IMG/VR virus record: IMGVR_UViG_3300030329_004647
Span: 168,029 to 232,028 of that record
Direction: 5' to 3' (one strand)
DNA: 64,000 nucleotides
The notes under the pieces are model-generated. The model worked only from the letters and a program-made list of their open reading frames with translations. It ran no database searches and was not told the DNA's origin. Below are positions 6,067 to 41,503 of the stretch, piece after piece. How positions within the stretch are numbered: the stretch's first letter is position 1; each line of letters starts with the position of its first letter. The translations under genes and the position numbers were made by a program.

Positions 6067-6675
6067 TTAATCTTCGTCTGTAATCTTATATTCTAGCTCC
6101 TGTCCTACAAGAGGTTCTTCTTTTTCAATCTCTATATCAACTTCGGATTCTTCTTCAGTTGGTGGAGTCATCATTTCCTCATATTGTGTTAGTAAGTTTT
6201 GAACACCTCTACCAAACAAATCTTCATTACCTATATTATCTCTAAGGTCAAAAATATCTTGTACTAGTCTATCTTGAGGAGAAATAGCCACCTCTGTTTC
6301 TTCCATTACTCTATGGACTATTCTTTTAAGTGTAGACTCATTTATTTTTACAACTTTTTTAGATTCATTCATTCCTAATCCTTTAAATGTTCCATATCCT
6401 TCAGAGTTTTCATTTTTACCCTCAACCTCCATTTCTTTCATTTCTTCCATTTCAGTTTTTTCAGTATCCTCCATTTCAGCTATCTCATCAGCTATTTTTC
6501 GTTGTGCTTTTGTTAACTCCTTAATGTCTGCGTTATACTTACCATGATTTTTTAAACCTTCTTTTGCAATCTTAAGAGCGTTGTATGCTGCTTTTAAGTC
6601 TGTTTTAGTATTCTTTGAATCACCCTCGTATAGGTTCATTAGAGTTTTACGTAGTTTAGATTTTATATTTTCCAT
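6067..6675 (-). CDS. Acidic hypothetical protein, probable head-internal/virion protein
   Basis: Likely start is ATG 6675 (MENIKSKLRK), which follows a TATTTAT motif, rather than 6723. Contains KKVVKINESTLKRIVHRVMEE. Confidence 0.6.
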   Translation of the reverse strand: MENIKSKLRKTLMNLYEGDSKNTKTDLKAAYNALKIAKEGLKNHGKYNADIKELTKAQRKIADEIAEMEDTEKTEMEEMKEMEVEGKNENSEGYGTFKGLGMNESKKVVKINESTLKRIVHRVMEETEVAISPQDRLVQDIFDLRDNIGNEDLFGRGVQNLLTQYEEMMTPPTEEESEVDIEIEKEEPLVGQELEYKITDED

Positions 6676-6924
6676 ACTGTTGTGTTTTAATAATAAATAT
6701 TTACTACACCAATAAAGATACATTAGGATTATAGTATAAATTTTTTCTTTATAAAAAAGCGGTATTTAATTATAATATTTTAATCACATTTAGAGCTAGT
6801 CTTTAAAAAGTAAAAAACAATAAAAAAATAGTTAAGTTTGTCGTAAAAATATTAACAACAGAAATAGTAACATAGCTAAACTTATGACAATTAGCTGTAA
6901 TTAAATAAAAATCACCCTAAAACC

Positions 6925-6952
6925 TTGACTTATTTTACGACAATTTTATATT
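6925..6952 (+). promoter_or_regulatory. Sigma70-like promoter in divergent intergenic region
   Basis: TTGACT (6925-6930), 16 bp, TATATT (6947-6952); the spacer holds one arm of an 11-bp inverted repeat. Confidence 0.4.
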
Positions 6953-7158
6953 AAAACTTGGAAAAATTAGAGTAAATTAGTGAAAATAATGGAAAATAAT
7001 TGATATTAAAAAAAATACGTCTAACGTGTGTATAAACGTAAGTTTTTTAATAATTAAAATTAAGTTTGTATTATTGACTACTATGGTTGGGGTTAAAATA
7101 TGGGTTTTTAGTAATAATAACGGGTATTTATGACTACCAATAACAGTTATAAAAAATA

Positions 7159-7389
7159 GTGATTATGGATTCAGTATTTAAGTATGTAAATGGTTTTATT
7201 AGTGGAGTTGGAAGTCTTTTTATGGCTTTCATACCAGTAACGATTCTATGGTATGTATTGACTGGCGGTGCTGTGTTTAACATGGACGTAGTAGGAAACT
7301 TAACAAATCTTCTAACAAGTTTAGGTGACGGAGGTTTTGTTGGTTTAGTAGTATTAGTTATTCTAGCATCCTTTTTTACAAAAAAGTAA
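7159..7389 (+). CDS. Small membrane protein (2-3 hydrophobic helices)
   Basis: 76 aa with hydrophobic segments (GSLFMAFIPVTILWYVL; GFVGLVVLVILASFF) ending KK. Confidence 0.75.
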   Translation: MIMDSVFKYVNGFISGVGSLFMAFIPVTILWYVLTGGAVFNMDVVGNLTNLLTSLGDGGFVGLVVLVILASFFTKK

Positions 7390-7463
7390 AATAAAAAAAG
7401 GTGAAGATAATTCTCTTACACCTTAAAAAAAAATGAGAATATAAAAAGAGAAAAAATTTTAAT

Positions 7464-7871
7464 ATGAAAAATTTAATTTTAGCAGGGATTTTCAGTTTAG
7501 CCACTTTATGTGGGTATTCACAAACAAAGGGAGACTGGTATGTAGGAACAGGCGACATCGCGAACAGCGCTTGGACTGACTGGGCAGTATCACCAACGAT
7601 TGGATACGGAATTATGGACAACCTAATGATAGGAATGTCTGTATCACAAGCTGATTCTACTGTGGATATGGATTTGGATTTTCACGCAAGATACTTTACA
7701 AAAGGATATTTTGTGTATGTTGCAACAGATGGATTGAGTACTGACAACATGGTTTTAGGAGGTGGTAAAATGTTTGCCTTCAGAAACAATATGTACATCG
7801 ACCCAAAAATTGTATACAACATGGGTGAAAAGACCACAAACCTTACAATGGGATTTGGTTTCAAATTTTAA
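7464..7871 (+). CDS. Outer-membrane beta-barrel protein (8-stranded) with Sec signal peptide
   Basis: MKNLILAGIFSLATLCGYS/Q signal peptide, eight alternating amphipathic strands, and C-terminal MGFGFKF (BAM beta-signal ending in Phe). Confidence 0.85.
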   Translation: MKNLILAGIFSLATLCGYSQTKGDWYVGTGDIANSAWTDWAVSPTIGYGIMDNLMIGMSVSQADSTVDMDLDFHARYFTKGYFVYVATDGLSTDNMVLGGGKMFAFRNNMYIDPKIVYNMGEKTTNLTMGFGFKF

Positions 7872-7984
7872 CAAAATAGTAAAGGATAAATAATTTAAGA
7901 CGGTTGCAAATTAGTGAAAGTTTTTTCCCGCAACCAAAAGATGGAAACTAATTACGGATTTTGAATTATTTAAGAGTTGCGAAG

Positions 7985-8010
7985 AACCCTGACGACGGTC
8001 AGGGTTTTTT
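7985..8010. terminator. Intrinsic terminator between convergent OMP and SOD genes
   Basis: AACCCTGAC-GACG-GTCAGGGTT then TTTT; perfect 9-bp stem. Confidence 0.85.
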
Positions 8011-8662
8011 ATTGCTTAGACTTTAAAGTATCACTAACATTATTCCAGTTAACAACTTTCCAGAAATTTTTTATATATTTTTTTCTATCGGACATGTAAT
8101 TAAGGTAATAAGCGTGTTCCCACACATCTAAACCTAGTAGAGGTTCCCCTAATCCTTCCATTAAAGGATTATCTTGATTGGGTGTTGTAACTATTTTAAG
8201 TCGTCCATTTTTTAACACCAACCAACACCAACCAGAACCAAATACTTTACCTGACTCTTCGTCAAACTGTCTTTTAAAATTATCAAGACTACCAAAATCT
8301 TTATTTATTTTTTGTCTTAGTTCTTTAGACAAGTCTGTTTTGTTGGGGGTGATATAATCTTTAAAAAATAAACTATGATTATAATACCCACCAGCATTAT
8401 TCCTAGTAAAAGTATCATAATTTTTAATACCTTTAATAATTTTTTCTATGTCTTTTGGTGGGTTTTTTCTTTTAGATAGAGCTTCATTTAGTTTTGTTGT
8501 ATACCCCTTATAATGTTTATTATAATGTTCCCACATTGTTTCATAACCCACGAAATCTTTAACAGAATTATAATCATATGGTAGACTAACCCTCTTAAAA
8601 AATGATTTTTTAGCTTCCGCTATAATATTTTCGTTTAATATTTTCTTAATTAAATTTCTCAT
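8009..8662 (-). CDS. sodA: Superoxide dismutase, Mn-type signature
   Basis: Metal ligands in EHYNKH, NNAGGYYNH and DVWEHAYY, plus FGSGWCWL and NQDNP. GG..NH together with QD is the Mn-SOD pattern. Has a ~20-aa extra N-terminal leader. Confidence 0.93.
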   Translation of the reverse strand: MRNLIKKILNENIIAEAKKSFFKRVSLPYDYNSVKDFVGYETMWEHYNKHYKGYTTKLNEALSKRKNPPKDIEKIIKGIKNYDTFTRNNAGGYYNHSLFFKDYITPNKTDLSKELRQKINKDFGSLDNFKRQFDEESGKVFGSGWCWLVLKNGRLKIVTTPNQDNPLMEGLGEPLLGLDVWEHAYYLNYMSDRKKYIKNFWKVVNWNNVSDTLKSKQ

Positions 8663-9114
8663 TGTTTACTAACTTTTTGCCAATAAGGTGACCTTAAAAG
8701 TACTGGGTACAGCTTTTTAGCTATCTCTTTGAATACTTTATTAATATTATCCATGTCGTCAACGTCTTTTTTATTGTCATGAACAAATCTAAGAGCCGCT
8801 CTAGTAAAAATATCTCTTATCTCTTGTGCATTATCCCATAAATATTTAACAGGACCCTCTTGGTCCTCAAAAAAAGAATCTGTATTATAATCGCCAGTTT
8901 CCTTTCCTCGATTTAAAATATCAGAAGAAAAATGATGCTCCAAATTAGACTTACCGTCTGTTAAAAATGGTGAAAGGTCGGTCATTAACATATTATAAGC
9001 ACCCCATAGTCTAAGCTGTTCAATATATCTAGAGACCTCAAAACGGTCTTTTGTTGGTAGTAGTTCTAAAGCATCGTAATTATCTATTAGGTAGTCTATA
9101 TCTGATTTTGACAT
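8659..9114 (-). CDS. Hypothetical protein
   Basis: 151-aa ORF; its stop overlaps the SOD start (ATGA overlap), consistent with translational coupling. Confidence 0.7.
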   Translation of the reverse strand: MSKSDIDYLIDNYDALELLPTKDRFEVSRYIEQLRLWGAYNMLMTDLSPFLTDGKSNLEHHFSSDILNRGKETGDYNTDSFFEDQEGPVKYLWDNAQEIRDIFTRAALRFVHDNKKDVDDMDNINKVFKEIAKKLYPVLLRSPYWQKVSKQ

Positions 9115-9144
9115 ATAAATTAAGTTTAGTTTTTAAATAAATAT

Positions 9145-10878: not shown

Positions 10879-10932
10879 TATATACAAATATAATAAATTC
10901 TCTAATATAAACAATTAAGTATTTATCTATAT

Positions 10933-12721: not shown

Positions 12722-12827
12722 TATTCATACTTTACAATAAATAGTACGTTTTTAGCAATACCTTTTCGGTTGGGAAAAAGTATTTATCTAATGATAAAAT
12801 AAATTTATTTAGTAAAAAAAGACAAAT

Positions 12828-15800
12828 ATGGCTAACGGTAATAATAGAGTATTCGTATCTCCAGGGGTATACACCTCGGAAAAAGATTTAAGTTTTGTAG
12901 CACAGAGTGTTGGTGTTACAACATTAGGTTTGGTCGGAGAGACCAAAAAAGGGCCAGCTTTTGAACCAATCTTTGTAAGTAATTATAGTGACTTTACAAC
13001 TAGATTTGGTAGTACATCAGCTGACAAATTTGTTGATACACAAATTCCTAAACACGAATTAGCATTTATAGCAAAATCTTACTTATCACAATCAAATCAA
13101 TTGTTTGTGACAAGAGTATTAGGATTAAATGGTTATGATGCAGGACCATCTTGGTCAATAACAACAATCGGTGAAGTAGACCCACTATACGTTTCTGCTG
13201 CAACATCAGCTCAAACAACGAGTAACTGGAGTGACATTATTTACATTCCAATGACCTCAACTACCGCTACGCCAGACGGAATATATTTAACATATAACTC
13301 TGCGACAGGAAAGTTTAGTGACCCTATCACTGATATGACAACATTTGGGGGTGCCAATTTCCCAATTCAAAATTACCAACTAACAGGCCAAACATTTATT
13401 AATGGGTATGGAACTACTTTAGGTACTTTTATTGATGAAATAACCTCTTTTGTTAACACAGTAAATGGTGGGGACAATATGTCTTGGGATGGTTCAGGAC
13501 TAAGTCAATACTGGTATTATGGTGTATTAGGTACAGGAACAACTGTTGGTGGTGAAGGAGCAAATAGTTTTTGTGAACATTACGCTAACACGTGGATGAC
13601 AGGTAATACATCAGGATTATCCATTCAAGCAATAGACCATGAAAATAGATTAGCTGTTGACGCTTCAAACTTCTATGATGACCAAAATGATGGTTGGTAT
13701 GACACTTTATTCGAGTATGAATATGGTGAAGGTGCTAACTGTTACTGTACTTCTTATTCAGGTTCTTCATTTGATATGTTTGGTTATTCAGCTTTAACAG
13801 CTCAAACATATATAGATGAAGTTGACTTAAGTACTAGTGGAGCAAGTACATTCTTTGCTGGTGGACAATTTAATAATGACCCAACATCAGGAGGAACAAG
13901 TACAGAATGGTCAGGAGCTACAGGAGTAAATGGAACAGGTGGACAAGCTGTAATATCGTTTACGGCTACTAGTAGTGGTGGTCCAGAAACTTGGGCATAC
14001 AGAATTGGTTCAACATCAGCTAACGCAACAGGTGTAGTAGCTAATGTATGGAGTTCCCTATACCAAACACCAGTGGGAACATATGATAGTATAGGACCTG
14101 TAACGACACATCCTTATGTACCATCTGATTTTGACGAGGTATTATCAGGAGGAACAGCATCCACAACAACAGTATTAAAGAGTAATCCATATCCAGTACC
14201 ATTAACGCCATTCGATTTCGCGAAGAGTGGTACAACTTGTGATACTAGTATAGGAGCTTACTCAGCTGTTTCAGTAATTTATAGTGGATTTGCTAATATT
14301 GGTAGTTTAGTAGGTGGTAACTTAGGTGGAGCAGGAACTGGATTCGACCAAGGTAATCTATCTTCAGGTATTTCACATACCTTTGTTGGTTTCTCTGGAG
14401 CTGACGGACCAAACTCATATTCTGGGACACTTGCTGTTAATATGGTATTCTATAGTGCTGATTGTCAATCACAAAATCTGTTAACATTACAATTAAGTGG
14501 TTGTGCAGCTGAATATCAAAATGTAAGTGCAGACACTGAATATCACAACTTAGTAGTGGCAACAATGAGAGCTAGAGGACAAAGTTCACTTTCTACAGGA
14601 GGACCAGTCTATACAATTAGTGGTTCATCATCATCCTCAACAGGAGCTTACGGTGATGTAACATTTAATTGTTTAGGAGCTTACCAACCAATAGTTGATG
14701 ACCCATTCTTTAATTTTGGTATAAGTGCTAGAACGGATGGTGGAGCAACATATAACTTTGATGTGAGCATGAATACATCATCTAAAAATTACCTACCAAA
14801 AGTATTAGGTAGAAATGTATTTGATAAAAAAATGGAGGAAGTTCCTATTTTTGTTGAGGAAGTTTACCCTAATATCCTAAAATATGGATTTAATAGAAAT
14901 AGAATTAGAGGCCTAAACTGTTGTTTATTAAAATTACCAGCAGCAAGATGGAACAATACAGGTATGGATTCTATAGGTTGGTACATGCAACAATGGCAAA
15001 CACCAGAAACACCTTACGTAGTTTCAGAATTACGAGGTGAGGATGTATATAGACTATTTAAATTTGTTTCTATTTCAGACGGTACAGAAGCAAATAGAGA
15101 ATATAAAGTATCAATTATAAACATTTCATTTGAAAGATTAGAGTTTGATGTATTAGTTAGAGATTTCTATGATAGTGACGCTAGTCCTGTTGTTTATGAA
15201 AAATTCACAAGATGTAGTTTAGACCCATCATTACCTTCTTTTATAGGAAGAAAAATAGGTACTTCAGATGGTCAATACGAATTAAGGTCTAAATACACAA
15301 TGTTATATTTAACTGAAGAGGTTTTAGATGGAACACTTAAAGACGCTGTTCCAGCAGGTTTTGATTACTACGATTTTAGAAATTATGAAAACGGTGCTGG
15401 TAAAACGTGTAGAGCTATTCCACCGATGTTAAAATATAAAACAAAATACTTTACGGCTGGAGAAGTAGTTTATGACCCACCTTATGATAACGCTGACGGA
15501 AGTGCTAACTCTTATATATCACCAGGTGACAATGTGAGAAAAACATATTTAGGTATTTCTGACACAGTAGGTGCAGCTATAGATTTTGATTTCTTCGAGT
15601 ATAAAGGTAAGAAAACACCAGTATCGGTTTGTACAGATGTTAATGGTGTAAGTTGGGGAACAATCAGAAAAGGTTTCCATATGGATTCAGGAGCTACAAT
15701 AATTGTTGCGGGTTCTGGAACGTATATAACACAATCGGGTACAACTCTTAGTGGTGACTCTATCTTTGAGGTGGGAGCAGCAGACTTTAGAGGTGAACCA

Positions 15801-16913
15801 GCATCAAGTAATCACCCATACAAAAAACTAAATTCTCGTAAATTTACTTTAGCACCTTATGGTGGTTTTGATGGATGGGATGAATACCGTAAGTTTAGAA
15901 GTAATGGTGATTCCTATAGACTTGGACTACAAGGATTCTTAAATGGAGCGTGTAATGACGCGGTTTACCCGTCAGCTGTAGGAGACGGTTCATTTAAAGC
16001 TCTAAGTAGTACTGAAGCAAATACGGATTATTTTGCATACCTTAGAGGTGTACAAACATTCCAAAACCCAGAAGCGGTTAATATTAATGTATTTGCTACA
16101 CCAGGTATTGACTACGTTAACAACCAATCTCTAGTTAAAGAATCTATAGATATGGTAGAAAGTCAAAGAGCTGACTCGTTATATATTACGACAACACCTG
16201 ACTTTAACATGTACGTACCAACATCTTCAGATGTGACAAATCAAATATCACCAACAGAAGCTGGAGATAATTTAGAGGACTCACTAATAGATTCTAACTA
16301 TACGGCAACGTATTATCCATGGATTTTGGTTAGAGATGACAATAGTAATAAACAAATCTATATACCACCAACATCAGAGGTTACTAGAAACTTAGCATTA
16401 ACTGATAATGTAGCATTCCCTTGGTTCGCTTCAGCAGGTTATACACGTGGTTTAGTAAACGCACAAAGAGCTAGAAGAAAACTGACTCAGGACGAAAGAG
16501 ATACGTTATATGTTGATAGAATTAACCCAATAGCGACATTCTCAGATGTAGGACCAATTATTTTTGGACAGAAAACTCTACAAATTAAAGAGTCTGCTCT
16601 TGACAGAATTAATGTTAGAAGATTATTATTACAAACAAGAAAACTAATTTCCGCGGTAGCTGTTAGACTACTATTCGAACAAAATGATGATGTAGTAAGA
16701 CAACAATTCTTAGACCTAGTTAACCCTATATTAGATTCTATTAGAAGAGATAGAGGTTTAACAGACTTTAGAGTTGTACTTTCTAACGACCCAGAAGAAA
16801 TTGATAGAAATGAATTAAATGGTAAGATTTACTTAAAACCTACAAGAGCGTTAGAGTTTATCTTCATAGAATTCTTGATAACACCAACTGGAGCAGAATT
16901 TGAATCAGTTTAA
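12828..16913 (+). CDS. Contractile tail sheath protein (T4 gp18-like), unusually large
   Basis: N-terminal FVSPGVYTSEKDLS...GPAFEP and C-terminal NINVFATPG...YYPW...WFASAG...DRINVRRLL...IYLKPTRALEFIFIEF. Confidence 0.96.
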   Translation: MANGNNRVFVSPGVYTSEKDLSFVAQSVGVTTLGLVGETKKGPAFEPIFVSNYSDFTTRFGSTSADKFVDTQIPKHELAFIAKSYLSQSNQLFVTRVLGLNGYDAGPSWSITTIGEVDPLYVSAATSAQTTSNWSDIIYIPMTSTTATPDGIYLTYNSATGKFSDPITDMTTFGGANFPIQNYQLTGQTFINGYGTTLGTFIDEITSFVNTVNGGDNMSWDGSGLSQYWYYGVLGTGTTVGGEGANSFCEHYANTWMTGNTSGLSIQAIDHENRLAVDASNFYDDQNDGWYDTLFEYEYGEGANCYCTSYSGSSFDMFGYSALTAQTYIDEVDLSTSGASTFFAGGQFNNDPTSGGTSTEWSGATGVNGTGGQAVISFTATSSGGPETWAYRIGSTSANATGVVANVWSSLYQTPVGTYDSIGPVTTHPYVPSDFDEVLSGGTASTTTVLKSNPYPVPLTPFDFAKSGTTCDTSIGAYSAVSVIYSGFANIGSLVGGNLGGAGTGFDQGNLSSGISHTFVGFSGADGPNSYSGTLAVNMVFYSADCQSQNLLTLQLSGCAAEYQNVSADTEYHNLVVATMRARGQSSLSTGGPVYTISGSSSSSTGAYGDVTFNCLGAYQPIVDDPFFNFGISARTDGGATYNFDVSMNTSSKNYLPKVLGRNVFDKKMEEVPIFVEEVYPNILKYGFNRNRIRGLNCCLLKLPAARWNNTGMDSIGWYMQQWQTPETPYVVSELRGEDVYRLFKFVSISDGTEANREYKVSIINISFERLEFDVLVRDFYDSDASPVVYEKFTRCSLDPSLPSFIGRKIGTSDGQYELRSKYTMLYLTEEVLDGTLKDAVPAGFDYYDFRNYENGAGKTCRAIPPMLKYKTKYFTAGEVVYDPPYDNADGSANSYISPGDNVRKTYLGISDTVGAAIDFDFFEYKGKKTPVSVCTDVNGVSWGTIRKGFHMDSGATIIVAGSGTYITQSGTTLSGDSIFEVGAADFRGEPASSNHPYKKLNSRKFTLAPYGGFDGWDEYRKFRSNGDSYRLGLQGFLNGACNDAVYPSAVGDGSFKALSSTEANTDYFAYLRGVQTFQNPEAVNINVFATPGIDYVNNQSLVKESIDMVESQRADSLYITTTPDFNMYVPTSSDVTNQISPTEAGDNLEDSLIDSNYTATYYPWILVRDDNSNKQIYIPPTSEVTRNLALTDNVAFPWFASAGYTRGLVNAQRARRKLTQDERDTLYVDRINPIATFSDVGPIIFGQKTLQIKESALDRINVRRLLLQTRKLISAVAVRLLFEQNDDVVRQQFLDLVNPILDSIRRDRGLTDFRVVLSNDPEEIDRNELNGKIYLKPTRALEFIFIEFLITPTGAEFESV

Positions 16914-16934: not shown

Positions 16935-17219
16935 ATGGAATTGAATAAAGAAATTTTAATAGAAAGTTTAGGTGTGAAGTCGACTGGAGCTAAACATTTT
17001 ACTAATAATAAAAAACAATCAGTTATTATAAGTGAAAAACAACTCGAAAGATTAGTAGAAAAATATGTCAATGAAGATGAAAATGTTGTTAATATCGACA
17101 TACCATCGGGAAGTAACGTAGAAGTTACCCCAAAAGATGAAGATATGGCAGAAGATGTTGTAGCAGGAATCGACAATGACATGATTGATGAGGAAGAATC
17201 TTGTCCAGACGATGTTTAA
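16935..17219 (+). CDS. Small acidic hypothetical protein
   Basis: 94 aa; contains KKQSVIISEKQLERLVEKYVNE. Confidence 0.7.
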   Translation: MELNKEILIESLGVKSTGAKHFTNNKKQSVIISEKQLERLVEKYVNEDENVVNIDIPSGSNVEVTPKDEDMAEDVVAGIDNDMIDEEESCPDDV

Positions 17220-17280: not shown

Positions 17281-17337
17281 TATAACCATATAGTTTATGT
17301 AAGTTGTATTAACAAAATGTTTTAATATTTATAAGAT

Positions 17338-18198
17338 ATGAGTAAAATTATCATAACAGCAAAACAACTAGAACATCTAAGTAATGTAGTTAAAGAACAA
17401 GCTAGAGCAAATAATGGTGCTGTAAGAGCTTATTCTTTTGATTGGGACGACAATATCCTCCATATGCCTACTAAAATTGCAATTGATTACAATAACGGCA
17501 CAGAATGGGTACCAACCCTCATAACCACTGAAATGTTTTCTAAGGTAAGAGAAAATGAAAATTTTAGGGTAAATGAAGATTCCTTTGTTAATTTTAGAAA
17601 TGATAATGTTTTTTTTGACGACCTTAATGAAGCTTTACAAAAAAGAAGTTTCGCTCCTTCTTTTGAAAAATTTAAAGAATCTTTAATATACGCTAATCCT
17701 TTTTCTATTATTACAGCAAGAGGACATACACCAGAAGTTTTTCCTAAAGGTATAAAAGTAATAATTGGAAATACTTTTAGTGAGGGAGAACTAGAAGATA
17801 TGTTATTTAACATTAAGAAGAAATATCCAGAAACTGTGGACTATTCACCGTGGGACGCGATTGATTTTTATTTAAATGAAAATGAATACCACCCTGTAAC
17901 ATCCGAAGAATTCGGTAAAAAATTCGGAAATAGGTTCATCAATACGGATAACCCTGAAGAAGCTAAAAAAACAGCACTTAGAAATTATATAGAAAAAGTT
18001 GTAAACGGTGTTAGTAAAATAGAAGATGGTAATTATTCACAATTATCTATAGGTTTTAGTGACGATGACTACGGTAATATAAGTGCTGTAATAAATTTAA
18101 TAAAAGATGAACTAAACCAAAAGTATCCACAAGTAAATTTTGTTGTATATGACACATCTAGTGGTGACATAAACAAAATTGTAGTTAAAAGAGAATAG
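17338..18198 (+). CDS. HAD-superfamily phosphatase-like protein
   Basis: Motif I FDWDDNI (DxD), motif II IITARG, conserved Lys (EAKK), motif IV GFSDDD. Confidence 0.75.
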   Translation: MSKIIITAKQLEHLSNVVKEQARANNGAVRAYSFDWDDNILHMPTKIAIDYNNGTEWVPTLITTEMFSKVRENENFRVNEDSFVNFRNDNVFFDDLNEALQKRSFAPSFEKFKESLIYANPFSIITARGHTPEVFPKGIKVIIGNTFSEGELEDMLFNIKKKYPETVDYSPWDAIDFYLNENEYHPVTSEEFGKKFGNRFINTDNPEEAKKTALRNYIEKVVNGVSKIEDGNYSQLSIGFSDDDYGNISAVINLIKDELNQKYPQVNFVVYDTSSGDINKIVVKRE

Positions 18199-18268
18199 AA
18201 ACAAGAAAGTTTTCAAATATAGATATATTTATAATAGTAAATAAAAGAAATTTTTAAAAATACACAAT

Positions 18269-18757
18269 ATGGCTGATTTATTAATGAAAATGCCCGTTCC
18301 TTATGAACCGAAAAGAAAGAATCGGTTTATTTTGAGATTTGATTCTTCACTGGGTTTAAACGAGTGGTACGTTGAAAGTACATCAAGACCACAAGTAACA
18401 ATAAATTCTGTAGAAATACCTTTCCTAAACACATCTACTTATGTGGCAGGAAGATTTACATGGAATACTGTTAATGTAACATTCAGAGACCCAATCGGTC
18501 CTTCAGCAGCACAAGCGTTGATGGAGTGGGTTAGACTACACGCTGAGTCAGTTACTGGTAGAATGGGATATGCTGCGGGATATAAGAAAAATATCGATTT
18601 AGAATTATTAGACCCTACAGGAGTTGTTGTAGAAAAATGGGTAATGCAAGGTGTATTTTTAACAGATGTTAATTTTAATGACTTATCTTATAGTGATGAC
18701 GGACTATCTAACATTTCTGCTACACTAAGACCAGACAGATGTATATTAGTTTACTAA
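18269..18757 (+). CDS. Tail tube protein (T4 gp19-like)
   Basis: YEPKRKNRFILRF...RPQV...GRFTWNTVNVTFRDP...LDPTGVVVEKW; 162 aa. Confidence 0.92.
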   Translation: MADLLMKMPVPYEPKRKNRFILRFDSSLGLNEWYVESTSRPQVTINSVEIPFLNTSTYVAGRFTWNTVNVTFRDPIGPSAAQALMEWVRLHAESVTGRMGYAAGYKKNIDLELLDPTGVVVEKWVMQGVFLTDVNFNDLSYSDDGLSNISATLRPDRCILVY

Positions 18758-18778: not shown

Positions 18779-18805
18779 AAAAAACCCCAGTTATGGGGTT
18801 TTTTT
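18779..18805. terminator. Bidirectional terminator between tube gene and Mom-like gene
   Basis: AAAAAACCCCA-GTTA-TGGGGTTTTTT; the loop contains the minus-strand stop of the Mom-like gene. Confidence 0.85.
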
Positions 18806-20421: not shown

Positions 20422-20458
20422 AAATATCTTTGTAAATATTTATCAATAAAGATTTAAT

Positions 20459-29800: not shown

Positions 29801-32800
29801 GCTGACAATTGGGACGACGCTATAAACAGTGGTACTTTAGGATATTTTAACACAAGTATTAACACAGGTACAGGTCCTGAATTTCTATATACGGATTCAA
29901 TAATGGGATTAGGTTTTTCATACACCTTACCAGACGGAACAATAGCTACAGGAGATAATGGGTCAGAAATATCTTTAGGGATATATCCTAAGTTAATGGC
30001 CGCAGCTCATTATATGGTTACAGGTCAAGACGTTTTAAGTCCAGTAGTTGATGACGCAACATTACTTAATAATTTTAATATTAGTTCAGGTTTTAGTGTT
30101 AATGTTATAAAAGAAACTGACGCGTCATTTAATGCCAACAACCAACAAGTAAATTACTATACAACCTATGGTACAGGAAATTCAGTTACCGTACAATCCA
30201 CCATAGACACAGCGGTAAGTACAGCAGGAGTTCCTTCTGGTGATTATTATATTTTATATCCGTCAGCTGGTGGAATGTTATCTAACGAATTTGAGTCTGC
30301 CGCTGGAGTTACATCCTATAACAATCAAGTAGGTGGACACAACGGTTCCGTGAGATTTTTATGGTCGTTACCACAGTATGGTTATTTTTCAGGTGACACC
30401 TTCCCAGCTAGAGACCAATACTATAAGAAAATTTTTAATGACAAAGACGAACAAGATATTTTCGCTATAAGTAATGGTGGTACCGAATTGACGCAAAGAT
30501 ATTCTTATATTGATGAGTTACTAGCTGTATTTCCTACAGAAGTATTAAATTATTTTGAGGATATGTTTAAAAATTTCTGTCAAAGAAGAAACCCTTCTAC
30601 AGAAGAGATTGAAGGAGAATATACTAGTCTACACCAAGTTTTAGGACAAATACTATATGTTCCTTTAAGTGATGTTAAATTGCCAGACCAAGGAACGGGT
30701 AAGTTTACCTCTAATATTGCAGCGGCACAACACAAAAAAGCTATTAATATACTAGAAACCTTTACTCAACAAAAAGTGTTTTATAAAAAAGGGTCAGTAA
30801 ATAATCTAGATAACGTTATAAATATTGACGGTAACCCCATACAATCTTATCAAGCTTTGGTTTACTTATTAAGAGCTAATGGTACTAGTTCTATGTCTCA
30901 ATTACCAGAAGCTATACAACAAAGTTGGGACCAACCATTTAAAGATATTTTCTTCCCGTATAACAATAATTTACCACCCGACATACCCTTAGCAACCTTT
31001 ATGGTTAATAATCCAGGATTATATTCTACTTTTCAGTATTATTTCCCATCAGCTTTTGGGGGGATAGATATGGTGACCGTCACCAACTCACCGGTATATG
31101 AGTTTTTTAGAGAAATAAATATAGCACCAACAGAAGAAAATGTACCGCTATTTGCCCCAATTATAAGAACATATTATTCTAATGGTAATAACTTAGAAAG
31201 TTTGGGTGAACTAGAAACTACATTATCACAAACACAAAATCAGTACCTAGAACAACTTTTTAATAACTTAAAAAAAATAGAGCCAGATACAAAAGAGGAA
31301 GATGCTATTATTGAAGATGACAGACCACTAATTGTGGCGGACAATTTAAAATTAGAACTATACCAATCCTTCAAACACCTTAATGACGCTTGGATTGCTG
31401 GATTAACTGGTTTGGAAGATAGGACATTACTTGAAAAATTTTATTTTTTAGATAGAGCTAATGAGGATATTGGTGACGAAGCTGTAATTGATATTTTTAT
31501 TATGCAACAATTAGGTAATCCATTTACACCAGACCCTAGTGCATCAGTAGATAGAACTTTAAACAGTTTTCTAAGTAAAATAGCGATGGACAATAACTTC
31601 TTAAAGTTAGACTTACCTTCATATATTAACTTTTTTGGTGTGGGTGACGCAAATTCAAGCTCTCAAGGAAACGCTATGTTTGGTACTTTTACTGAAGTCG
31701 ACACAACTAAATCTGGTCCAGTATTTCTTTACATCTATATCGGAGAAGAATCAACACACTTATCTGTAAAAACGGATAATTATGGATTTAACAACGATTC
31801 TTTTGATTTAAATAAAACAACCCCTAATCCGTTGGTAAGAACAACACCATTAAGCCCAGAAAAACAAGCTAGAAGTAACGCGATAATGGCATACACAGTT
31901 GATTTTGGAATACCTAATCAAAATGTTTTTACTAGTATAAATTTAGACCAATCACAAAGTGAAAATACCTCAGAAAGTTATATTGTTCTAGATGATTTAG
32001 CTTTAGCGGGTGGTGGTAAAAATGTATCTACTAACTCATTAAATTTATTTAACGTTTATAAAACTAGGTCTTACAACTGTTCGGTAGAAGCTATGGGATG
32101 CGCGTTAATACAACCAACCCAATATTTCCAACTAAGATACGTTCCTATGTTTTCTGGTGTTTACATGATTAAAAGCGTTGAACACAGTATAGCTCCAAAT
32201 ACGATGACTACTAAGTTTGAGGGTGTTAGAATACCGATACCAAATCTACCTAAAGTAACTGATTTAATAACTAGAGTACAAACTAGTTTACTAGAAAAAG
32301 TTAAGAGTGCTGTTGAAAAAGCAGACTCACCAGAAGAAGTTCCAGGTGACATGTTTGATTTTACCGAAGAAGAATTAAATCGTGGACCAGAAGAAGAAGG
32401 CGGACCAACTAATCAAACAGCACCAATTGCTGGAATAACCTTTAGTGCACCTGTTGATATTTCTAAAGTTGAAGACCCTAGAACTATTGATAGTAGTAGA
32501 GTTTCAGGTGGCCCAGAAGTGGGAGACCCAAGAAGTGGAGGTAGAGTACATAAAGGTGTGGACCTATATCCTAAAACCGATTTCATGGGTGAAGAACTTG
32601 AAATTACTGCAGCACATAGTGGTAAAATAACCAAAATTGTTAGAAATTGTCTAGATGATAACACAGTTGGTTCTTGTGGTGGAGGTTATGGAAATCACGT
32701 CAGAATTGTAAGAGAAATTGTAGAATGGCCAAGTAATGTTACCTTAGCAGAAGGTACTATAATAAAGGTTGAGACAAGATATTGTCACCTAAAAAGAGGT

Positions 32801-32995
32801 AGTGTAGCCGCTGGTTTAAGTGAAGGTCAAGAAATAAATGATGGTGTATTTTTAGGTCACATGGGAGCTACAGGAAACGCTTCACCTGGTAAAGAACACC
32901 TACATTATGAAGTAAGGGTCACCAAATTAAATAGTAGATTAGCCCCTATAACTAAAGTAGCTGACCCGCTAGAAGGATATATTCCTGGACTATAA
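26885..32995 (+). CDS. Giant baseplate hub protein (gp27/VgrG-like) with C-terminal M23 peptidase
   Basis: Hub-type GITSINV...PEVTINFTDIRG and TRSYNCSVEAMGCALIQPTQYFQL...GVYMIKSVEHSI. C-terminal HKGVD...GGYGNHV...RYCHL...GHMGATG...HLHYEV is the M23 Zn motif. Confidence 0.8.
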   Translation: MSISGNEDILTEKIGGNLTVINPNKVITNKGVKDRLVNHEDLVIYANLVAKIVPRSKILLGDADTESEVAIDLFGGEVNFLKPKGKKSLDSSWTEAFTNPDFNKITYSENEDFAQTGAYTKSLKEAEDFQGFGITSINVVINQSFVPEVTINFTDIRGKTLFEQGDTGGPYTAFFHMPYPVFHLTLKGYYGTAVKYQLKLMKFNAAFDSSSGDYNITCKFIGNHSALLNDLNLHQAMIAPYMYPSPTRGEGGVSTGLGMQIMNEVYQTYEDRGLIKKDFPRYTIFALMNKVNQFETELASNFKKEDLQFMDDKKTYQDELTKFYNSIFGTGQWFDTFLDKTTATVIPTNVTASAGTENIVAYQLLDATDSGVAAANDAWVKRKDTYVERLNSNLTFGETGQRPITVSGRFDVSHQIASGTSSTLEGPYWYIVDKKSESFGIQWLNVQKEFEKNFNELQTEVSKNLNKTFVETLGFYPSIRNLHAVILAGSDTFIRLLDRVHTEAFKQRNNQKRLRVLVPEDVKNEEKTVFPWPIYYEETEDNERILQYPGASKSLSITGAYDAKLWPEVEFVEEYTKASAFHTESINAPFENQFVTIDYIPLSVREFPFDNEVYGQSAVDKMVMEIYDRSFDLLNYGSLTWQNRSSDVIPAIQELAQYDAEVLEKRIKLNSNLATFFGNSTVTDINSIFEYFNNEKGQDVILRWQLGLPNTSYISQRNIEGKNIPGTNYGVYPGYISFIQLVETKPYTQVLNYIHDQKSDSTFDMYPLRWDMGSAWIQETLANGQTADEGSFYTTKEIQLDPEAKLFSTQNLKYFLCNHHVINEDPTNESIINDEIISTKDLKTKEEWESHYQGTDGKQIKHITEGLNHSGDYTKVLSLFNTPYFANALAKGYIEKDQPGAFLNLGYMFLQSLPIATTKEKMLWSPGNYGSYISQILNQLAAHHQIPLAFALKIGSIWWRYKTAGITNPDTDADNWDDAINSGTLGYFNTSINTGTGPEFLYTDSIMGLGFSYTLPDGTIATGDNGSEISLGIYPKLMAAAHYMVTGQDVLSPVVDDATLLNNFNISSGFSVNVIKETDASFNANNQQVNYYTTYGTGNSVTVQSTIDTAVSTAGVPSGDYYILYPSAGGMLSNEFESAAGVTSYNNQVGGHNGSVRFLWSLPQYGYFSGDTFPARDQYYKKIFNDKDEQDIFAISNGGTELTQRYSYIDELLAVFPTEVLNYFEDMFKNFCQRRNPSTEEIEGEYTSLHQVLGQILYVPLSDVKLPDQGTGKFTSNIAAAQHKKAINILETFTQQKVFYKKGSVNNLDNVINIDGNPIQSYQALVYLLRANGTSSMSQLPEAIQQSWDQPFKDIFFPYNNNLPPDIPLATFMVNNPGLYSTFQYYFPSAFGGIDMVTVTNSPVYEFFREINIAPTEENVPLFAPIIRTYYSNGNNLESLGELETTLSQTQNQYLEQLFNNLKKIEPDTKEEDAIIEDDRPLIVADNLKLELYQSFKHLNDAWIAGLTGLEDRTLLEKFYFLDRANEDIGDEAVIDIFIMQQLGNPFTPDPSASVDRTLNSFLSKIAMDNNFLKLDLPSYINFFGVGDANSSSQGNAMFGTFTEVDTTKSGPVFLYIYIGEESTHLSVKTDNYGFNNDSFDLNKTTPNPLVRTTPLSPEKQARSNAIMAYTVDFGIPNQNVFTSINLDQSQSENTSESYIVLDDLALAGGGKNVSTNSLNLFNVYKTRSYNCSVEAMGCALIQPTQYFQLRYVPMFSGVYMIKSVEHSIAPNTMTTKFEGVRIPIPNLPKVTDLITRVQTSLLEKVKSAVEKADSPEEVPGDMFDFTEEELNRGPEEEGGPTNQTAPIAGITFSAPVDISKVEDPRTIDSSRVSGGPEVGDPRSGGRVHKGVDLYPKTDFMGEELEITAAHSGKITKIVRNCLDDNTVGSCGGGYGNHVRIVREIVEWPSNVTLAEGTIIKVETRYCHLKRGSVAAGLSEGQEINDGVFLGHMGATGNASPGKEHLHYEVRVTKLNSRLAPITKVADPLEGYIPGL

Positions 32996-32996
32996 G

Positions 32997-33026
32997 TTGA
33001 CATTTTATAAAATAACAAATATTTAT
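32997..33026 (+). promoter_or_regulatory. Composite promoter: TTGACA plus TATTTAT motif
   Basis: TTGACA (32997-33002), 17 bp, TATTTAT (33020-33026); ATG at 33043. Confidence 0.5.
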
Positions 33027-33279: not shown

Positions 33280-34072
33280 TAATCTAAAAAACAAACTACA
33301 CGAAGAACTAAAAAGATTTAATAATATAGGAAACTATGTTAAAAATCTAGAAGAACAAATTGTATTAGGTACAGGAAGAAGTTCTGGATTCGTAGAAAAA
33401 CAAGGAAATTCACCAAGAGTAATTCAATTTGCTCAACGTCAAGAAATGGGAGAACAAGAAGAGGTAGCACCTGAAGAAGAGTTAGCGGTTGGAGACGAAG
33501 AGGTTGCTGATGAAGAATTAGCAGCTGTAGGAGATGAAGAAGTAGCAGCTGTAGGAGATGAAGAAGTAGCAGTAGGTGACGAAGCAGTTGGTGCTGAAGA
33601 AGAAGGTGACGCTGCTGTAGAAGATGAATTAGCAGTCGCAGATACAGGTGATACTGATACTGAAGATACTGTGGAAGTAGACGTTACTGATTTAGTTGAC
33701 AAACAGAAAGAAATTGAAACAGCTGTTAAAAGTAGTGAAGAAAATATTAGTGGGGCAAATGATAAGTTATCTAGTTTATTAGACAAACTAGATGAATTAG
33801 AAGGTACTTTAGCTGATATGGATTCACAATTATCTAAAATTGAAACACTAGAAAAAAAGATTGAACAATTCAGACCACGTACCGCTAGAGAAAAAGTAGA
33901 ACAAAGAAAAGATTTTGATAGTGGTCCATACAATACCTCACTTTCCGATTTTTGGCAAGAAGGACAAGAAAGATTTAAAAAACAAGGAAAAGAAGAATAT
34001 GTACTTACTCCTGATGAAGCTAAAGACTATAGTGAAACAGACATCCAACAAAGTTTTAACCCACCTAGTTAA
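33272..34072 (+). CDS. Acidic-repeat/coiled-coil protein, probable head-internal or scaffold-like
   Basis: N-terminal KLHEELKRF...NLEE, a central EEVAAVGD repeat tract, then a heptad coiled coil (KLSSLLDKLDELEGTLADMDSQLSKIETLEKKIE). Confidence 0.6.
   Translation: MDNNLKNKLHEELKRFNNIGNYVKNLEEQIVLGTGRSSGFVEKQGNSPRVIQFAQRQEMGEQEEVAPEEELAVGDEEVADEELAAVGDEEVAAVGDEEVAVGDEAVGAEEEGDAAVEDELAVADTGDTDTEDTVEVDVTDLVDKQKEIETAVKSSEENISGANDKLSSLLDKLDELEGTLADMDSQLSKIETLEKKIEQFRPRTAREKVEQRKDFDSGPYNTSLSDFWQEGQERFKKQGKEEYVLTPDEAKDYSETDIQQSFNPPS
33481..33600 (+). repeat. Coding tandem repeat
   Basis: Exact 24-bp unit GCAGCTGTAGGAGATGAAGAAGTA at 33521-33544 and 33545-33568, with degenerate flanking copies. Confidence 0.9.
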
Positions 34073-34129: not shown

Positions 34130-34186
34130 TTTTATAGATTATATTATGTATAAAAATTATGTATTAAAAAAGAAAATTAAAAAGTT

Positions 34187-35056: not shown

Positions 35057-35068
35057 TATATTACCAAT

Positions 35069-36070: not shown

Positions 36071-36089
36071 AACCCACTAATGTATAAAA

Positions 36090-37527: not shown

Positions 37528-37536
37528 GAGAGTAAA

Positions 37537-38940: not shown

Positions 38941-38967
38941 AAATAAAATAAATAATAAAATTAAAAT

Positions 38968-40872
38968 ATGGAGATTTCGAATAAAATTTTGTCTGATATT
39001 ACTGTTTACATGAAGTACGCAAAATATCTACCAGAACTAAACAGAAGAGAAACTTGGGAAGAGTTAGTAACGAGAAATAAAAATATGCACATCAAAAAGT
39101 ATCCACACTTAAAAGAGGATATTGAGGAGAAGTATAAGTTTGTTTATGATAAGAAGGTATTGCCATCTATGAGGTCTATGCAATTTGGTGGAAAACCAAT
39201 TGAGATAAGCCCAAATAGAATTTATAATTGTGCATATATGCCAATTGACCATATAGATTCTTTTGCTGAATGTATGTTCTTATTATTAGGAGGTACGGGA
39301 GTAGGTTATTCCGTACAAAAACACCACGTAGCTAAATTACCCGTAATTCAAAAACCATACCCAAAAAGAAAACGTAGATTTTTAATCGGTGACTCAATCG
39401 AAGGTTGGGCGGACTCGATTAAAGTTCTTATGAAATCATACATGAATGGTGGAGGAAGTAGAGTGGAATTTGATTATTCAGATATTAGACCTAAAGGAGC
39501 AAGATTAATCACATCAGGTGGTAAAGCACCAGGCCCACAACCATTAAAGGAGTGTCTGGTTAAAATAGAAGGATTATTAAACGCAAAAGAAAATGGAGAA
39601 CAACTTACAACAATTGAGGTACATGATATTATATGTTATATCGCAGACGCGGTATTGGCCGGAGGTATTCGTAGAGCAGCTCTTATTAGTTTATTTAGCG
39701 CTGATGACGATGCAATGATTGGATGTAAAGCTGGTAACTGGTGGGAACTAAACCCACAACGTGGTAGAGCAAATAACTCAGCTGTATTGATGAGACATAA
39801 GATAACTCAAGAATTTTTCTGGGAATTATGGAAAAGAGTTGAACTATCAGGAGCAGGAGAACCAGGAATATATTTCAATAATGATAAAGATTGGGGCACA
39901 AATCCTTGTTGTGAGATTGCTTTAAGACCCTATCAGTTCTGTAACTTATGTGAAGTAAATGTTTCAAACATTGAGTCCCAAGAAGATTTAAATATAAGAG
40001 TTAAAGCAGCGGCATTTATCGGAACACTTCAGGCAGGATATACAGCTTTTCATTATTTAAGAGATGTGTGGAGAGAGACAACAGAGAAAGATGCACTAAT
40101 TGGTGTTTCAATGACAGGTATTGGTTCAGGTAAAGTTCTTAATTATGATATGAAAAAAGCTGCTAGTTTAGTAAAAAGAGAAAATACCAGAGTATCTAAA
40201 TTACTAGGAATTAATCAAGCAGCAAGAACAACCACGGTTAAACCAGCTGGAACTACTTCATTAACGTTAGGAACATCATCAGGTATTCATGCGTGGCATA
40301 ATGATTTCTATATTAGAAGATTACGTGTTGGTAAAAATGAAGCGATTTATTCTTATCTTTCACAAAATCATCCAGAATTAGTGGAGGATGAATATTTCAG
40401 ACCACACGACACAGCAGTAATTAGTATACCACAAAAAGCACCTAAAGGTTCAATAATGAGAACAGAGTCACCATTTGATTTATTAGAAAGAGTTAAAAAA
40501 GTAGCTACTGAATGGGTTAACTCTGGACATAGAAAAGGTTCTAACTCTCATAATGTATCTGCAACTATTTCTCTAAAAGAAGGTGAGTGGTTATCAGCAG
40601 GTAAATGGATGTGGGAAAATAGAAAATATTATAATGGGTTATCTGTACTACCATATAATGGTGGAACTTATACACAAGCTCCATTTGAAGATATTACCGA
40701 AGAAAAATATAATGAAATGATGAAGTCATTAAAAGATGTAAATCTATCTAATGTGGTAGAGTTAGACGATAATACAGATTTATCAGGAGAATTAGCCTGT
40801 TCGGGAGGAAGTTGTGAAATTGATGTAGATTTAAAAACTATAGAAAAGGAAGAAGAGCTTGATGAAGCATAG
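38968..40872 (+). CDS. nrdJ: Ribonucleotide reductase, class II (adenosylcobalamin-dependent)
   Basis: RIYNCAY, GTNPCCEI, CNL, TTVKPAGT, C-terminal ACSGGSC. No C-terminal YY pair and no adjacent nrdB. Confidence 0.9.
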   Translation: MEISNKILSDITVYMKYAKYLPELNRRETWEELVTRNKNMHIKKYPHLKEDIEEKYKFVYDKKVLPSMRSMQFGGKPIEISPNRIYNCAYMPIDHIDSFAECMFLLLGGTGVGYSVQKHHVAKLPVIQKPYPKRKRRFLIGDSIEGWADSIKVLMKSYMNGGGSRVEFDYSDIRPKGARLITSGGKAPGPQPLKECLVKIEGLLNAKENGEQLTTIEVHDIICYIADAVLAGGIRRAALISLFSADDDAMIGCKAGNWWELNPQRGRANNSAVLMRHKITQEFFWELWKRVELSGAGEPGIYFNNDKDWGTNPCCEIALRPYQFCNLCEVNVSNIESQEDLNIRVKAAAFIGTLQAGYTAFHYLRDVWRETTEKDALIGVSMTGIGSGKVLNYDMKKAASLVKRENTRVSKLLGINQAARTTTVKPAGTTSLTLGTSSGIHAWHNDFYIRRLRVGKNEAIYSYLSQNHPELVEDEYFRPHDTAVISIPQKAPKGSIMRTESPFDLLERVKKVATEWVNSGHRKGSNSHNVSATISLKEGEWLSAGKWMWENRKYYNGLSVLPYNGGTYTQAPFEDITEEKYNEMMKSLKDVNLSNVVELDDNTDLSGELACSGGSCEIDVDLKTIEKEEELDEA

Positions 40873-41053
40873 AGTCTCTAAAGAAATTTTGTACCATTTT
40901 AGTTGTGGTAATTGTAATAAATGGTGGTCAATAGCTGACTACCATTTATTGTCTATAGACAACAATAAAGATTTAAATTATAATAATGAAATAACATGTC
41001 CTCACTGTGGACATAGAGAAAAATTAATAGAAATAAAAAATGATAAGAAATGA
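40862..41053 (+). CDS. Small zinc-ribbon protein
   Basis: CGNC...CPHC pairs; ATG at 40862 (the track starts at TTG 40859). Confidence 0.7.
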   Translation: MKHRVSKEILYHFSCGNCNKWWSIADYHLLSIDNNKDLNYNNEITCPHCGHREKLIEIKNDKK

Positions 41054-41282
41054 CGATTGGATAACAGAGTTATACCACCAAGAAGGAAGAAAAGTAGAAT
41101 TTAATCAAAAAGATTTTTATAAAAGCAAGGAAGGGGCTATGGTAATGACAGAGGATTATCATATTCGGAGAGGTAGTTGTTGTGGTAGTGGATGTAAACA
41201 TTGTCCATACTGGCCACCACATCAAAAGATGAATAGAGAGTTAAGAGAGGATTTAAAATCAAAAGACCACAGACTTATATAA
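41040..41282 (+). CDS. Small Cys-rich protein (DUF5522-like)
   Basis: VMTEDYHIRRGSCCGSGCKHCPY. Confidence 0.75.
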   Translation: MIRNDDWITELYHQEGRKVEFNQKDFYKSKEGAMVMTEDYHIRRGSCCGSGCKHCPYWPPHQKMNRELREDLKSKDHRLI

Positions 41283-41302
41283 CAATTATATATTTATAAT
41301 AG

Positions 41303-41503
41303 ATGAAACCATTAATTAAAAAGGTATTAAGAGAATATTGGGAAAAAGAACCAGATAAATGGGATTTGGTAGCTGAGGACCTTAAAGAATGCCTAGAAAA
41401 TATAATTCAAAAACATAAATCTAATTTTTATGACGACCAGTACGCGGTAATCAGTGCTATAGAGGATATAATGGAGAATATGTTCGCAAAAGTACCACGA
41501 TAG
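41303..41503 (+). CDS. Hypothetical protein with leader motif
   Basis: 66 aa starting MKPLIKKVLRE; preceded by TATTTAT (41291-41297). Confidence 0.65.
   Translation: MKPLIKKVLREYWEKEPDKWDLVAEDLKECLENIIQKHKSNFYDDQYAVISAIEDIMENMFAKVPR

Follow-up and report, generated by a model that had tools for sequence, protein, structure and literature searches.

Several unrelated proteins of an uncultured marine virus begin with the same short amphipathic peptide, and we conclude with high confidence that this leader is a real, virus-specific and portable tag, selected as a peptide and carried by unrelated, probably late-expressed proteins. The DNA analysed here (64,000 nucleotides, referred to as the window) is the final 64 kb of the 232,028-bp contig IMGVR_UViG_3300030329_004647 (window position = contig position - 168,028), and its source is a distant T4-like myovirus, marine and with a jumbo genome. 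Within the window, the leader starts a superoxide dismutase (SOD) and a 66-residue protein, while a longer form of it starts a HAD-like protein and lies inside two other proteins. As for function, we favor the reading that the leaders are prohead-targeting propeptides resembling the capsid-targeting sequence (CTS) of phage T4, which would be removed by the phage's S77 protease; a rough probability for this is 0.45. Every sequence-level prediction of the capsid-targeting idea that could be tested came out favorably.

The short form of the leader follows the pattern M[KR]xLIKK[IV]LxE in the window, where it starts the SOD and the 66-residue protein (Table 1). N-termini were scored with a position-specific scoring matrix (PSSM) that was trained on relatives, with the window copies excluded, and compared with a null of 2,899 other N-termini (maximum 20.5 bits, 99th percentile 14.9). 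Both window copies score above the null maximum. Pfam confirms the identity of the SOD, and its sequence contains the contexts EHYNKH, NH and DVWEHAYY around residues that we take, by analogy with E. coli FeSOD, to be the metal ligands. Its extension (MRNLIKKILNENIIAE) occupies about 20 residues ahead of the Sod_Fe_N domain, whose match begins at residue 25, and codon 1 is the sole ATG, GTG or TTG among the first 30 codons. The start of the SOD gene overlaps the stop of the upstream open reading frame (ORF) 8659-9114, and the SOD is therefore probably transcribed from the promoter-like motif at 9137-9144 (described below). The gene for the 66-residue protein lies directly upstream of a gp25-like baseplate gene, with ATATTTAT 5 nucleotides ahead of its ATG; the orthologue in locus L099 begins MKNLIKKILREESYWQP (L-numbers denote loci of relatives, except that L333 is the window's own contig, 107402-128820).

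The long form follows the pattern (K/R)(K/R)-h-h-h-h-(T/S/N)-E-x-(Q/D)-h-x-x-h-h-x-x-h-h-x-E (h, hydrophobic). Applied strictly, it has 32 matches in related loci and none in reversed sequences; 21 of the matches lie at residues 3-8, 7 inside the protein and 4 at its very C-terminus. In the window it stands at the N-terminus of the HAD-like protein, whose gene has ATATTTAT 5 nucleotides ahead of its ATG. An AlphaFold2 (AF2) model of this protein has a leader helix at residues 8-25 with a predicted local distance difference test (pLDDT) score of about 65, and a core that begins at residue 28 with pLDDT above 90. A preliminary description of this DNA had called the protein a HAD enzyme. The leader is present, in its long form, but the enzymatic identity is tentative and is read from the motifs DxDxN, T, K and SDDD only: invariant residues D35-x-D37, T126, K210 and S241-D-D-D fit HAD motifs I-IV, and no significant match was found in Pfam, in a PDB sequence search or with Foldseek (best E-value 0.018; no HAD entry below E = 0.2). 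The strict pattern also matches inside ORF 16935, and in the relatives' genes at this position the motif is internal or C-terminal. ORF 6067 has orthologues in L018, L022 and L031, and ATATTTAT stands 17 nucleotides upstream of position 6675.

The six examples from which the preliminary description had drawn a shared leader did not fare equally. The SOD, ORF 41303, the HAD-like protein, ORF 16935 and an internal motif of ORF 6067 belong to the two forms described above. The N-terminus at 6675 (MENIKSKLRKTLMNLYE, 6625-6675) lies within the null range, so that in this protein only the internal motif is real. The segment of ORF 33272 (33284-33355, + strand) scores 0.8 bits, is beaten by 10% of the null N-termini and has no long-form match.

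The tag extends far beyond these window examples, to hundreds of uncultured relatives. A degenerate DNA pattern for ATG-x-N-L-I-K-K-I-L-x-E has 92 matches in IMG/VR, and 92/92 are at ORF starts. With the first 14 residues removed, the 92 tagged proteins form 40 clusters without detectable mutual similarity, and the residue order of the leader (M[KR]NLIKKIL[KR]E) is invariant over these 40 unrelated families. The sharing of one leader by unrelated proteins, which had been proposed from a few genes, is thereby borne out on a much larger scale. In 596 Gb of bacterial and archaeal genomes, the leader DNA pattern has two matches: one viral contig within a single-cell assembly and one internal chance match. 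When 1.84 billion protein representatives were searched with a profile built from residues 1-30, 196 cluster representatives matched at E of 0.001 or less, nearly all of them from residue 1; a word-indexed protein search limited to residues 1-40 gave 14 candidates only. In loci anchored on the HAD-like protein or the SOD, 4.0% of ORFs have the core motif starting no later than residue 20, which per position is about 28-fold more frequent than internally, and two sets of loci gave 39 and 34 N-terminal matches vs 4 and 12 anywhere in reversed controls.

The cargo behind the leader is diverse. Pfam domains found in tagged proteins comprise SOD, P-loop kinase (AAA_33/Zeta_toxin), C39-like cysteine peptidase (Peptidase_C39), GNAT, GP88 and L5_gp82, and the majority of tagged proteins are without any Pfam domain. 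PHROGs and Pfam gave nothing for the tagged small proteins, the head-module neighbors or the multi-module proteins discussed below, and an ESM Atlas look-up of one tagged protein returned weak viral matches without function. The leader strings were found in no paper of the literature searched, and nothing relevant came from a literature search on jumbo phages that package SOD.

A few further occurrences are worth recording. Contig QCKH01000009.1 (L192 / L120; 63,985 bp, from the single-cell assembly "Prochlorococcus sp. AG-409-L21"), which IMG/VR lists among its viral contigs as well, has five consecutive leader-tagged genes within 8 kb, one of them with a HELVH metallopeptidase-like motif; it represents either a phage caught in or on the sorted cell or a hint to the host. 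Flavobacterium phage immuto (NC_055915), a cultured relative, has faint versions of the tag only: an internal KKLIKKVLSEE in a 360-residue protein between portal and protease (L191:38579-39661), and MKLDLLKKLIKEAVKE on a small protein before the gp25-like gene (L276:37526-37945), which is the position of the window's 66-residue gene. The window's contig also has another shared peptide, LSE(I/V)NR(I/L)R.IMGLK(I/L), once N-terminal and once inside an 868-residue protein (L333:16544-17803 and L333:13320-15926); these are its only two matches in the loci scanned, with none in the reversed control.

The same cargo can carry different leaders. Among 55 distinct orthologues of the HAD-like protein, 29 have the long form (for example MSQKIIITEKQLRTISGGLTEE), 19 have the short form or a variant (for example MSNRNLIKKILKEVAEE, MKNLRGVIRRVLNE and MLHKKIVKEIVDEMLIE), 6 have a minimal MKRRLLYE and one has no leader; in 54/55 the leader is placed directly before the conserved core R-x-Y-x-F-DWDDNIL. 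Within the SOD family, the window protein and five relatives have a short leader, three have a long one (MKIIITESQYNLILE) and the most distant member has none. Both forms occur in the window's own genome, and L090 carries a hybrid leader (MKKILITERQLERLTKKVLNE), which shows that the long form's second half is the short form. A HAD-like homologue in the 735-kb uncultured phage LR756501 has MKKLSNIKNFELFLNE in place of the leader. In uncultured huge phages of 636-735 kb (L332 = LR756501.1 200001-250000, L330 and L331), several ORFs share this other kind of start, M-K-x-F-x-x-F-[IL]-N-E (examples are MKNFTRFINE, MKKLSNIKNFELFLNE and MNNIKTKLSEFINE), a pattern close to T4 MKTYQEFIAE. In LR756501, the neighbors of the homologue begin with MKNFTRFINE and the like, in a dialect nearer to the T4 peptide.

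Selection acts on the peptide. The SOD and HAD-like genes have no other ATG, GTG or TTG before the conserved core, so the leader must be translated. Across 69 distinct genes, synonymous codon choice is roughly as variable at N3, L4 (six codons), K6, L9 and E11 as elsewhere in these genomes, and the substitutions between orthologues are conservative (I/V/L, K/R); together these point to selection at the protein level. Leader variants on orthologues keep the amphipathic pattern with different codons. Three other explanations of the conservation were ruled out. First, a non-translated conserved DNA element does not fit the missing alternative starts or the variants that keep peptide over nucleotides. 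Second, a secretion signal (Sec, Tat or lipoprotein) would need an uninterrupted hydrophobic core of at least 10 residues behind a basic N-region, and NLIKKILKE is broken by Lys or Glu after every two hydrophobic residues; for contrast, a true signal peptide in the window is MKNLILAGIFSLATLCGYSQ at 7464. Third, a cellular sorting signal is incompatible with a tag that 596 Gb of cellular genomes essentially lack.

The tagged genes are probably expressed late. The preliminary description had noticed a TATTTAT motif ahead of several of them, and the positional part of this observation holds: 13/21 copies of [AG]TATTTAT in the window are in sense and at most 60 nucleotides upstream of start codons (Table 1). 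The total is not above chance, with 21 copies vs 24.8 expected. The window genes behind the motif are an adaptor-like gene, ORF 6067, the 8659-SOD operon, 10933, the sheath, HAD-like and tube genes, 20459, 33043, the 66-residue gene, the gp25-like gene and 43900, and the motif precedes no replication gene in the window. On the window's own contig and in relatives, it precedes terL, a post-portal gene, the protease and the scaffold-capsid operon. Given this placement before morphogenesis genes but not replication genes, we infer that the motif is a late (morphogenesis) promoter. It is present at 48% of leader genes vs 26% of other genes. In an extended form, AA[AG]TATTTAT, it is unlike the T4 late TATAAATA, and in short-leader genes it ends 4-7 nucleotides before the ATG, implying late mRNAs that are leaderless or nearly so. 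Marine RNA libraries contain fragments of the HAD-like, sheath and tube genes together, at least 99% identical and at similar low depth, where DNA carry-over is possible.

Table 1. Leader-bearing genes and promoter-like motifs in the window.
Feature	Position	Strand	Evidence
Fe/Mn superoxide dismutase with N-terminal extension of ~20 residues	8009-8662	-	Pfam Sod_Fe_C 1.2e-40, Sod_Fe_N 3.4e-14
Short leader of SOD, MRNLIKKILNE; second I-A-E site ends at residue 16 (8615-8662)	8630-8662	-	PSSM 26.9 bits
66-residue protein, short leader MKPLIKKVLRE at 41303-41335	41303-41503	+	PSSM 24.7 bits
HAD-like protein, long leader MSKIIITAKQLEHLSNVVKE at 17338-17397, between sheath and tube genes	17338-18198	+	orthologue comparison
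94-residue protein, internal long-form motif KKQSVIISEKQLERLVEKYVNE at 17010-17075, then acidic tail	16935-17219	+	strict long-form pattern
Acidic helix-rich 202-residue protein, probable start MENIK at 6675, internal long-form motif KKVVKINESTLKRIVHRVMEE at 6298-6360	6067-6675	-	long-form pattern
Promoter-like [AG]TATTTAT, sense-upstream copies	5996-6003, 6693-6700, 9137-9144	-	motif scan
Promoter-like [AG]TATTTAT, sense-upstream copies	7124-7131, 10919-10926, 12780-12787, 17325-17332, 18225-18232	+	motif scan
Promoter-like [AG]TATTTAT, sense-upstream copies	20436-20443, 33019-33026, 41290-41297, 41504-41511, 43877-43884	+	motif scan

The proposal of prohead targeting draws on the head genes of this phage and on the way the leaders end. 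The window's own contig (L333) encodes terL, a portal (Portal_T4 3.7e-77), a protease (Peptidase_S77 4.1e-25), an acidic scaffold and a capsid protein (Gp23 5.4e-71). The scaffold has a conserved N-terminal region (NAKEILASTMKEEI.ELV.ESL), and the protease of one relative is 36% identical to T4 gp21, with the contexts of the catalytic His85 and Ser140 kept. In T4, gp21 cleaves after Glu at I/LxE (PMC12991175); it removes 65 residues of gp23, 10 of gp24 and about 10 of IPI-III and Alt, and also cuts nine residues from its own N-terminus (PMC9958956). Corresponding sites can be seen in the clade studied here (↓ marks the cut or its counterpart): T4 FLTE65↓A aligns with LINE↓A/T of the clade's capsid protein, and the protease N-termini read GLLIE↓ (own genome), GILIE↓ or GLLTE↓, compared with T4 LLIE9↓. 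The leaders end at residue 8-22 with ILKE, ILRE, ILNE, IIAE, VVKE, LILE or LLYE, and in the window with ILNE11 and IAE16 (SOD), VLRE11 (66-residue protein) and VVKE20 (HAD-like protein). The propeptide of the major capsid protein contains LKVIKE, which is like a leader ending in another register and was not counted as evidence. Some tagged genes are also found at the head genes: head modules contain or adjoin the genes of long-leader proteins (L241 7970-8266, with protease and scaffold on either side; L280 12244-12753; L333 18795-19433), and capsid genes have short-leader genes as neighbors in L133, L157 and L160.

If the leaders do target the prohead, the amphipathic helix of 8-22 residues would attach accessory proteins that are made late to the scaffolding core while the prohead is assembling. 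Candidate cargo would include the SOD and the HAD-like protein, besides proteins resembling kinases and peptidases and numerous small unknowns. The gp21-family prohead protease would cut after the terminal Glu of (I/L)-x-E, leaving the mature protein in the capsid, from where it would reach the host along with the DNA. Each of these steps (docking to the core, cleavage, packaging and injection) is predicted from the features above.

Multiple observations weigh against prohead targeting. The leaders have no sequence homology to MKTYQEFIAE, with which they share the pattern M-K-x-h-…-h-h-x-E only, and they are strongly basic (+3), which the T4 CTS is not. Internal and C-terminal copies of the long form are hard to fit, as at a C-terminus cleavage after Glu could not remove the motif. 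In the window, the tagged genes adjoin sheath, tube and baseplate genes and a helicase rather than head genes, and overall tagged genes lie beside tail or baseplate genes as often as beside head genes. The mature parts of the tagged proteins are on average acidic (median isoelectric point 5.2) vs the highly basic T4 internal proteins. Where tagged genes are crowded (5 within 8 kb in L192), much capsid space would be needed. Ile8 is ATA in 96% of leaders vs 35% genome-wide, and this, together with close promoter spacing, suggests that promoter and leader may travel or act as one nucleotide-level cassette. Two of the six original examples are not members of the leader family. Finally, the capsid proteins of the closest isolates are only about 41-43% identical to those of the clade.

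The region behind the leader adds a second element. An acidic-aromatic box, E-S-D-D-F-D-W-I-K-D-V, follows about 20% of short leaders vs 0.6% in controls, and it is absent from the window. Many of the profile matches are multi-module proteins whose modules are mutually dissimilar (for example P0007, P0009, P0059, P0062, P0069, P0089 and L185:957-1760). Their modules meet at a junction of the form (I/L/V)-(N/K)-E-S-(D/E)(D/E)-(F/L)-(D/Q)-W-(I/V)-x-D-(I/V)-x-P, with 84 internal sites in 150 proteins; P3 of all 84 is I, L or V. The junction could be a polyprotein cleavage site or a docking box, and an I/L-x-E before every module is what gp21-type polyprotein processing would need. A bolder version of the targeting proposal, which we regard as somewhat improbable though worth stating, is that a large, aquatic, uncultured T4-like clade with jumbo genomes among its members uses the 11-residue address MKNLIKKILKE, its long variant and the (I/L)-N-E-S-DDFDW junctions to load dozens of unrelated enzymes and small effectors into the prohead, some as polyproteins, with gp21-type release and delivery with the DNA.

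The tight coupling between short leader and promoter keeps two other explanations alive. In the first, the leader is a docking or oligomerization helix for some other assembly, such as the tail or baseplate, a chaperone or an enzyme complex of late infection, and need not be cleaved. Gene order gives this some appeal: more than 50 relatives keep the HAD-like gene between sheath and tube, and the 66-residue gene stands before the gp25-like gene, where immuto has the leader-like MKLDLLKKLIKEAVKE. The long form is a strand-plus-helix unit that is usable internally or C-terminally, and the AF2 model has a separate N-terminal helix. We nevertheless consider such a docking role unlikely, since the invariable h-h-x-E ending and the I/L-x-E-S junctions are better explained by a Glu-specific protease. 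A tail location meets a further difficulty, in that the lumen of a myovirus tail is normally occupied by the tape-measure protein.

In the second, the short leader is a mobile expression or recombination cassette (late promoter, near-leaderless start and A/T-rich first 11 codons) through which newly acquired genes would gain late expression, and the peptide has little or no targeting role. The promoter motif stands 2-9 nucleotides from the ATG in 65/80 short-leader genes (81%), compared with 145/743 other genes (20%) and 3/17 long-leader genes. A terminator-like hairpin precedes some cassettes, and the 30 nucleotides after the ATG are almost pure A/T; besides the bias at Ile8, Ile5 is ATT in 84% of leaders vs 51% genome-wide. 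The extreme diversity of cargo would also be expected of a cassette. However, half of the leader genes lack the promoter motif and are translationally coupled in operons, the window SOD included. The G+C-richer variants (MKNLRGVIRRVLNE, MSEMRNIIKRVLRE) retain the amphipathic pattern, not the nucleotides, and most synonymous sites vary as elsewhere in these genomes. Moreover, the long form, with another sequence and another promoter spacing, has the same ending and substitutes for the short form on orthologues, and internal junction copies exist. A purely nucleotide-level cassette is thus improbable in our view. In T-even phages, promoter and CTS are reportedly conserved together around variable internal-protein genes, and a cassette structure would then be compatible with targeting.

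Chance or composition, in the K/I/L/N-rich N-termini of a genome with about 32% G+C (the value for both window and genome), could account for the two original examples that are no better than the null, but as a general explanation it is extremely improbable given 92 exact viral matches vs about one chance match in 596 Gb of cellular DNA, the reversed controls (0 for the long form; 4 and 12 anywhere for the core motif vs 39 and 34 N-terminal) and a residue order that is invariant in 40 unrelated families, and for the SOD, 41303, HAD-like, 16935 and 6067 motifs it is refuted by the cellular-genome and reversed-sequence controls.

Structural genes of the window encode a 1,361-residue tail sheath, a tail tube, and baseplate hub and wedge proteins; other genes encode a family-B DNA polymerase, SSB, a UvsX-like recombinase, a DnaB-like helicase, ribonucleotide reductase, an SNF2 helicase and a Mom-like protein. 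In the sheath (12828-16913, + strand), the sheath-family match is confined to the ends, implying a big insertion. The tail region also contains a 2,036-residue ORF (26885-32995, + strand), and the Mom-like DNA-modification gene (18791-19417, - strand; phrog_1384, 4.7e-37) is inserted between the genes for tube and baseplate hub, in the opposite orientation to them. The nearest isolates, at identities of about 30-45%, are Flavobacterium phage immuto, Microcystis phage Mel-JY01, Rhodothermus phage RM378, Pelagibacter phage HTVC008M and cyanophages, and 20 kb of the window had no megablast match among GenBank phages. The same phage is present in at least 10 marine DNA runs (2014-2025) at 90-100% of sampled words, and less completely in 8 others. 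Bacteroidota-style signal peptides (…LLSQ / …YSQ) occur on phage-encoded proteins in the window (7464-7871, + strand, a small, beta-barrel-like protein), in L241:12015-18932 and in L333:15923-16450 and 17800-18384; their style points to a Flavobacteriia-type host.

Should the tag prove to be a packaging address, the sequence alone would mark the proteins that abundant uncultured marine phages bring into the cell, and hundreds of "hypothetical" viral proteins would become candidate injected effectors or counter-defense factors. The T4 internal-protein principle would then be ancient and widely elaborated, and a short natural tag would be at hand for loading foreign proteins into capsids. If the modular-loading version also held, the capsid-borne effector arsenal would be far larger and more standardized than the T4 internal proteins. 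Even if the leader is not a packaging signal, a virus-only, invariant 11-mer on at least 40 unrelated families needs explaining.

The closest known system is that of T4, whose internal proteins have a common CTS, MKTYQEFIAE, that suffices for packaging foreign proteins (10.1101/2021.01.19.427310; PMC3012670; PMC5694885). The T4 CTS and propeptides are, like the leaders, N-terminal, about 10 residues long and common to otherwise unrelated, non-essential proteins, and they end hydrophobic-hydrophobic-x-Glu, which is the I/LxE site of gp21. The match is closest for T4 gp24, where MAKINELLRE↓S corresponds to the leader MKNLIKKILRE↓S in length and ending (PMC9958956, PMC5694885, PMC12991175), and Alt (MELITELFDE↓D) has the same architecture. 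Both phages have a gp20/gp21/gp22/gp23-type head, and the tagged genes, which in T4 are expressed with morphogenesis genes, here share a promoter-like motif with them. The acidic tails of the long-leader proteins in or beside head modules recall T4 gp67. There are also multiple distinguishing characteristics. In contrast to T4, there are two interchangeable leader forms, and the long strand-helix form may be internal or C-terminal. The spread is far wider (at least 40 families, and 196 clusters in public data), the cargo includes SOD and other enzymes, and an acidic-aromatic DFDW box follows about 20% of leaders.

The phages phiKZ, 201phi2-1 and SPN3US are likewise jumbo myoviruses with a gp21-related, Glu-cutting protease (PMC5694885). 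They have many inner-head proteins with N-terminal propeptides, and some of the paralogues have identical N-termini (PMC5694885). Their cleavage motif (phiKZ/SPN3US) is A/S/G-x-E and their propeptides are mostly longer than 100 residues, whereas here P3 is I, L or V and the leaders have 8-22 residues; the head genes of the window phage are T4-type, not phiKZ-type. Outside phage heads, the cargo-loading peptides of encapsulins and the N-terminal packaging signals of extracellular contractile injection systems (eCIS) also use a short portable peptide to send diverse enzymes into a protein shell or tube. Encapsulin peptides are usually C-terminal and are not removed, and those of eCIS are disordered stretches of about 50 residues; the window phage has neither system, and an ending that forms a protease site is foreign to both. 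The principle of a CTS is therefore known from T4, while the leader family, its two forms, the junction box, the breadth of the tag and its cargo are new relative to the literature searched.

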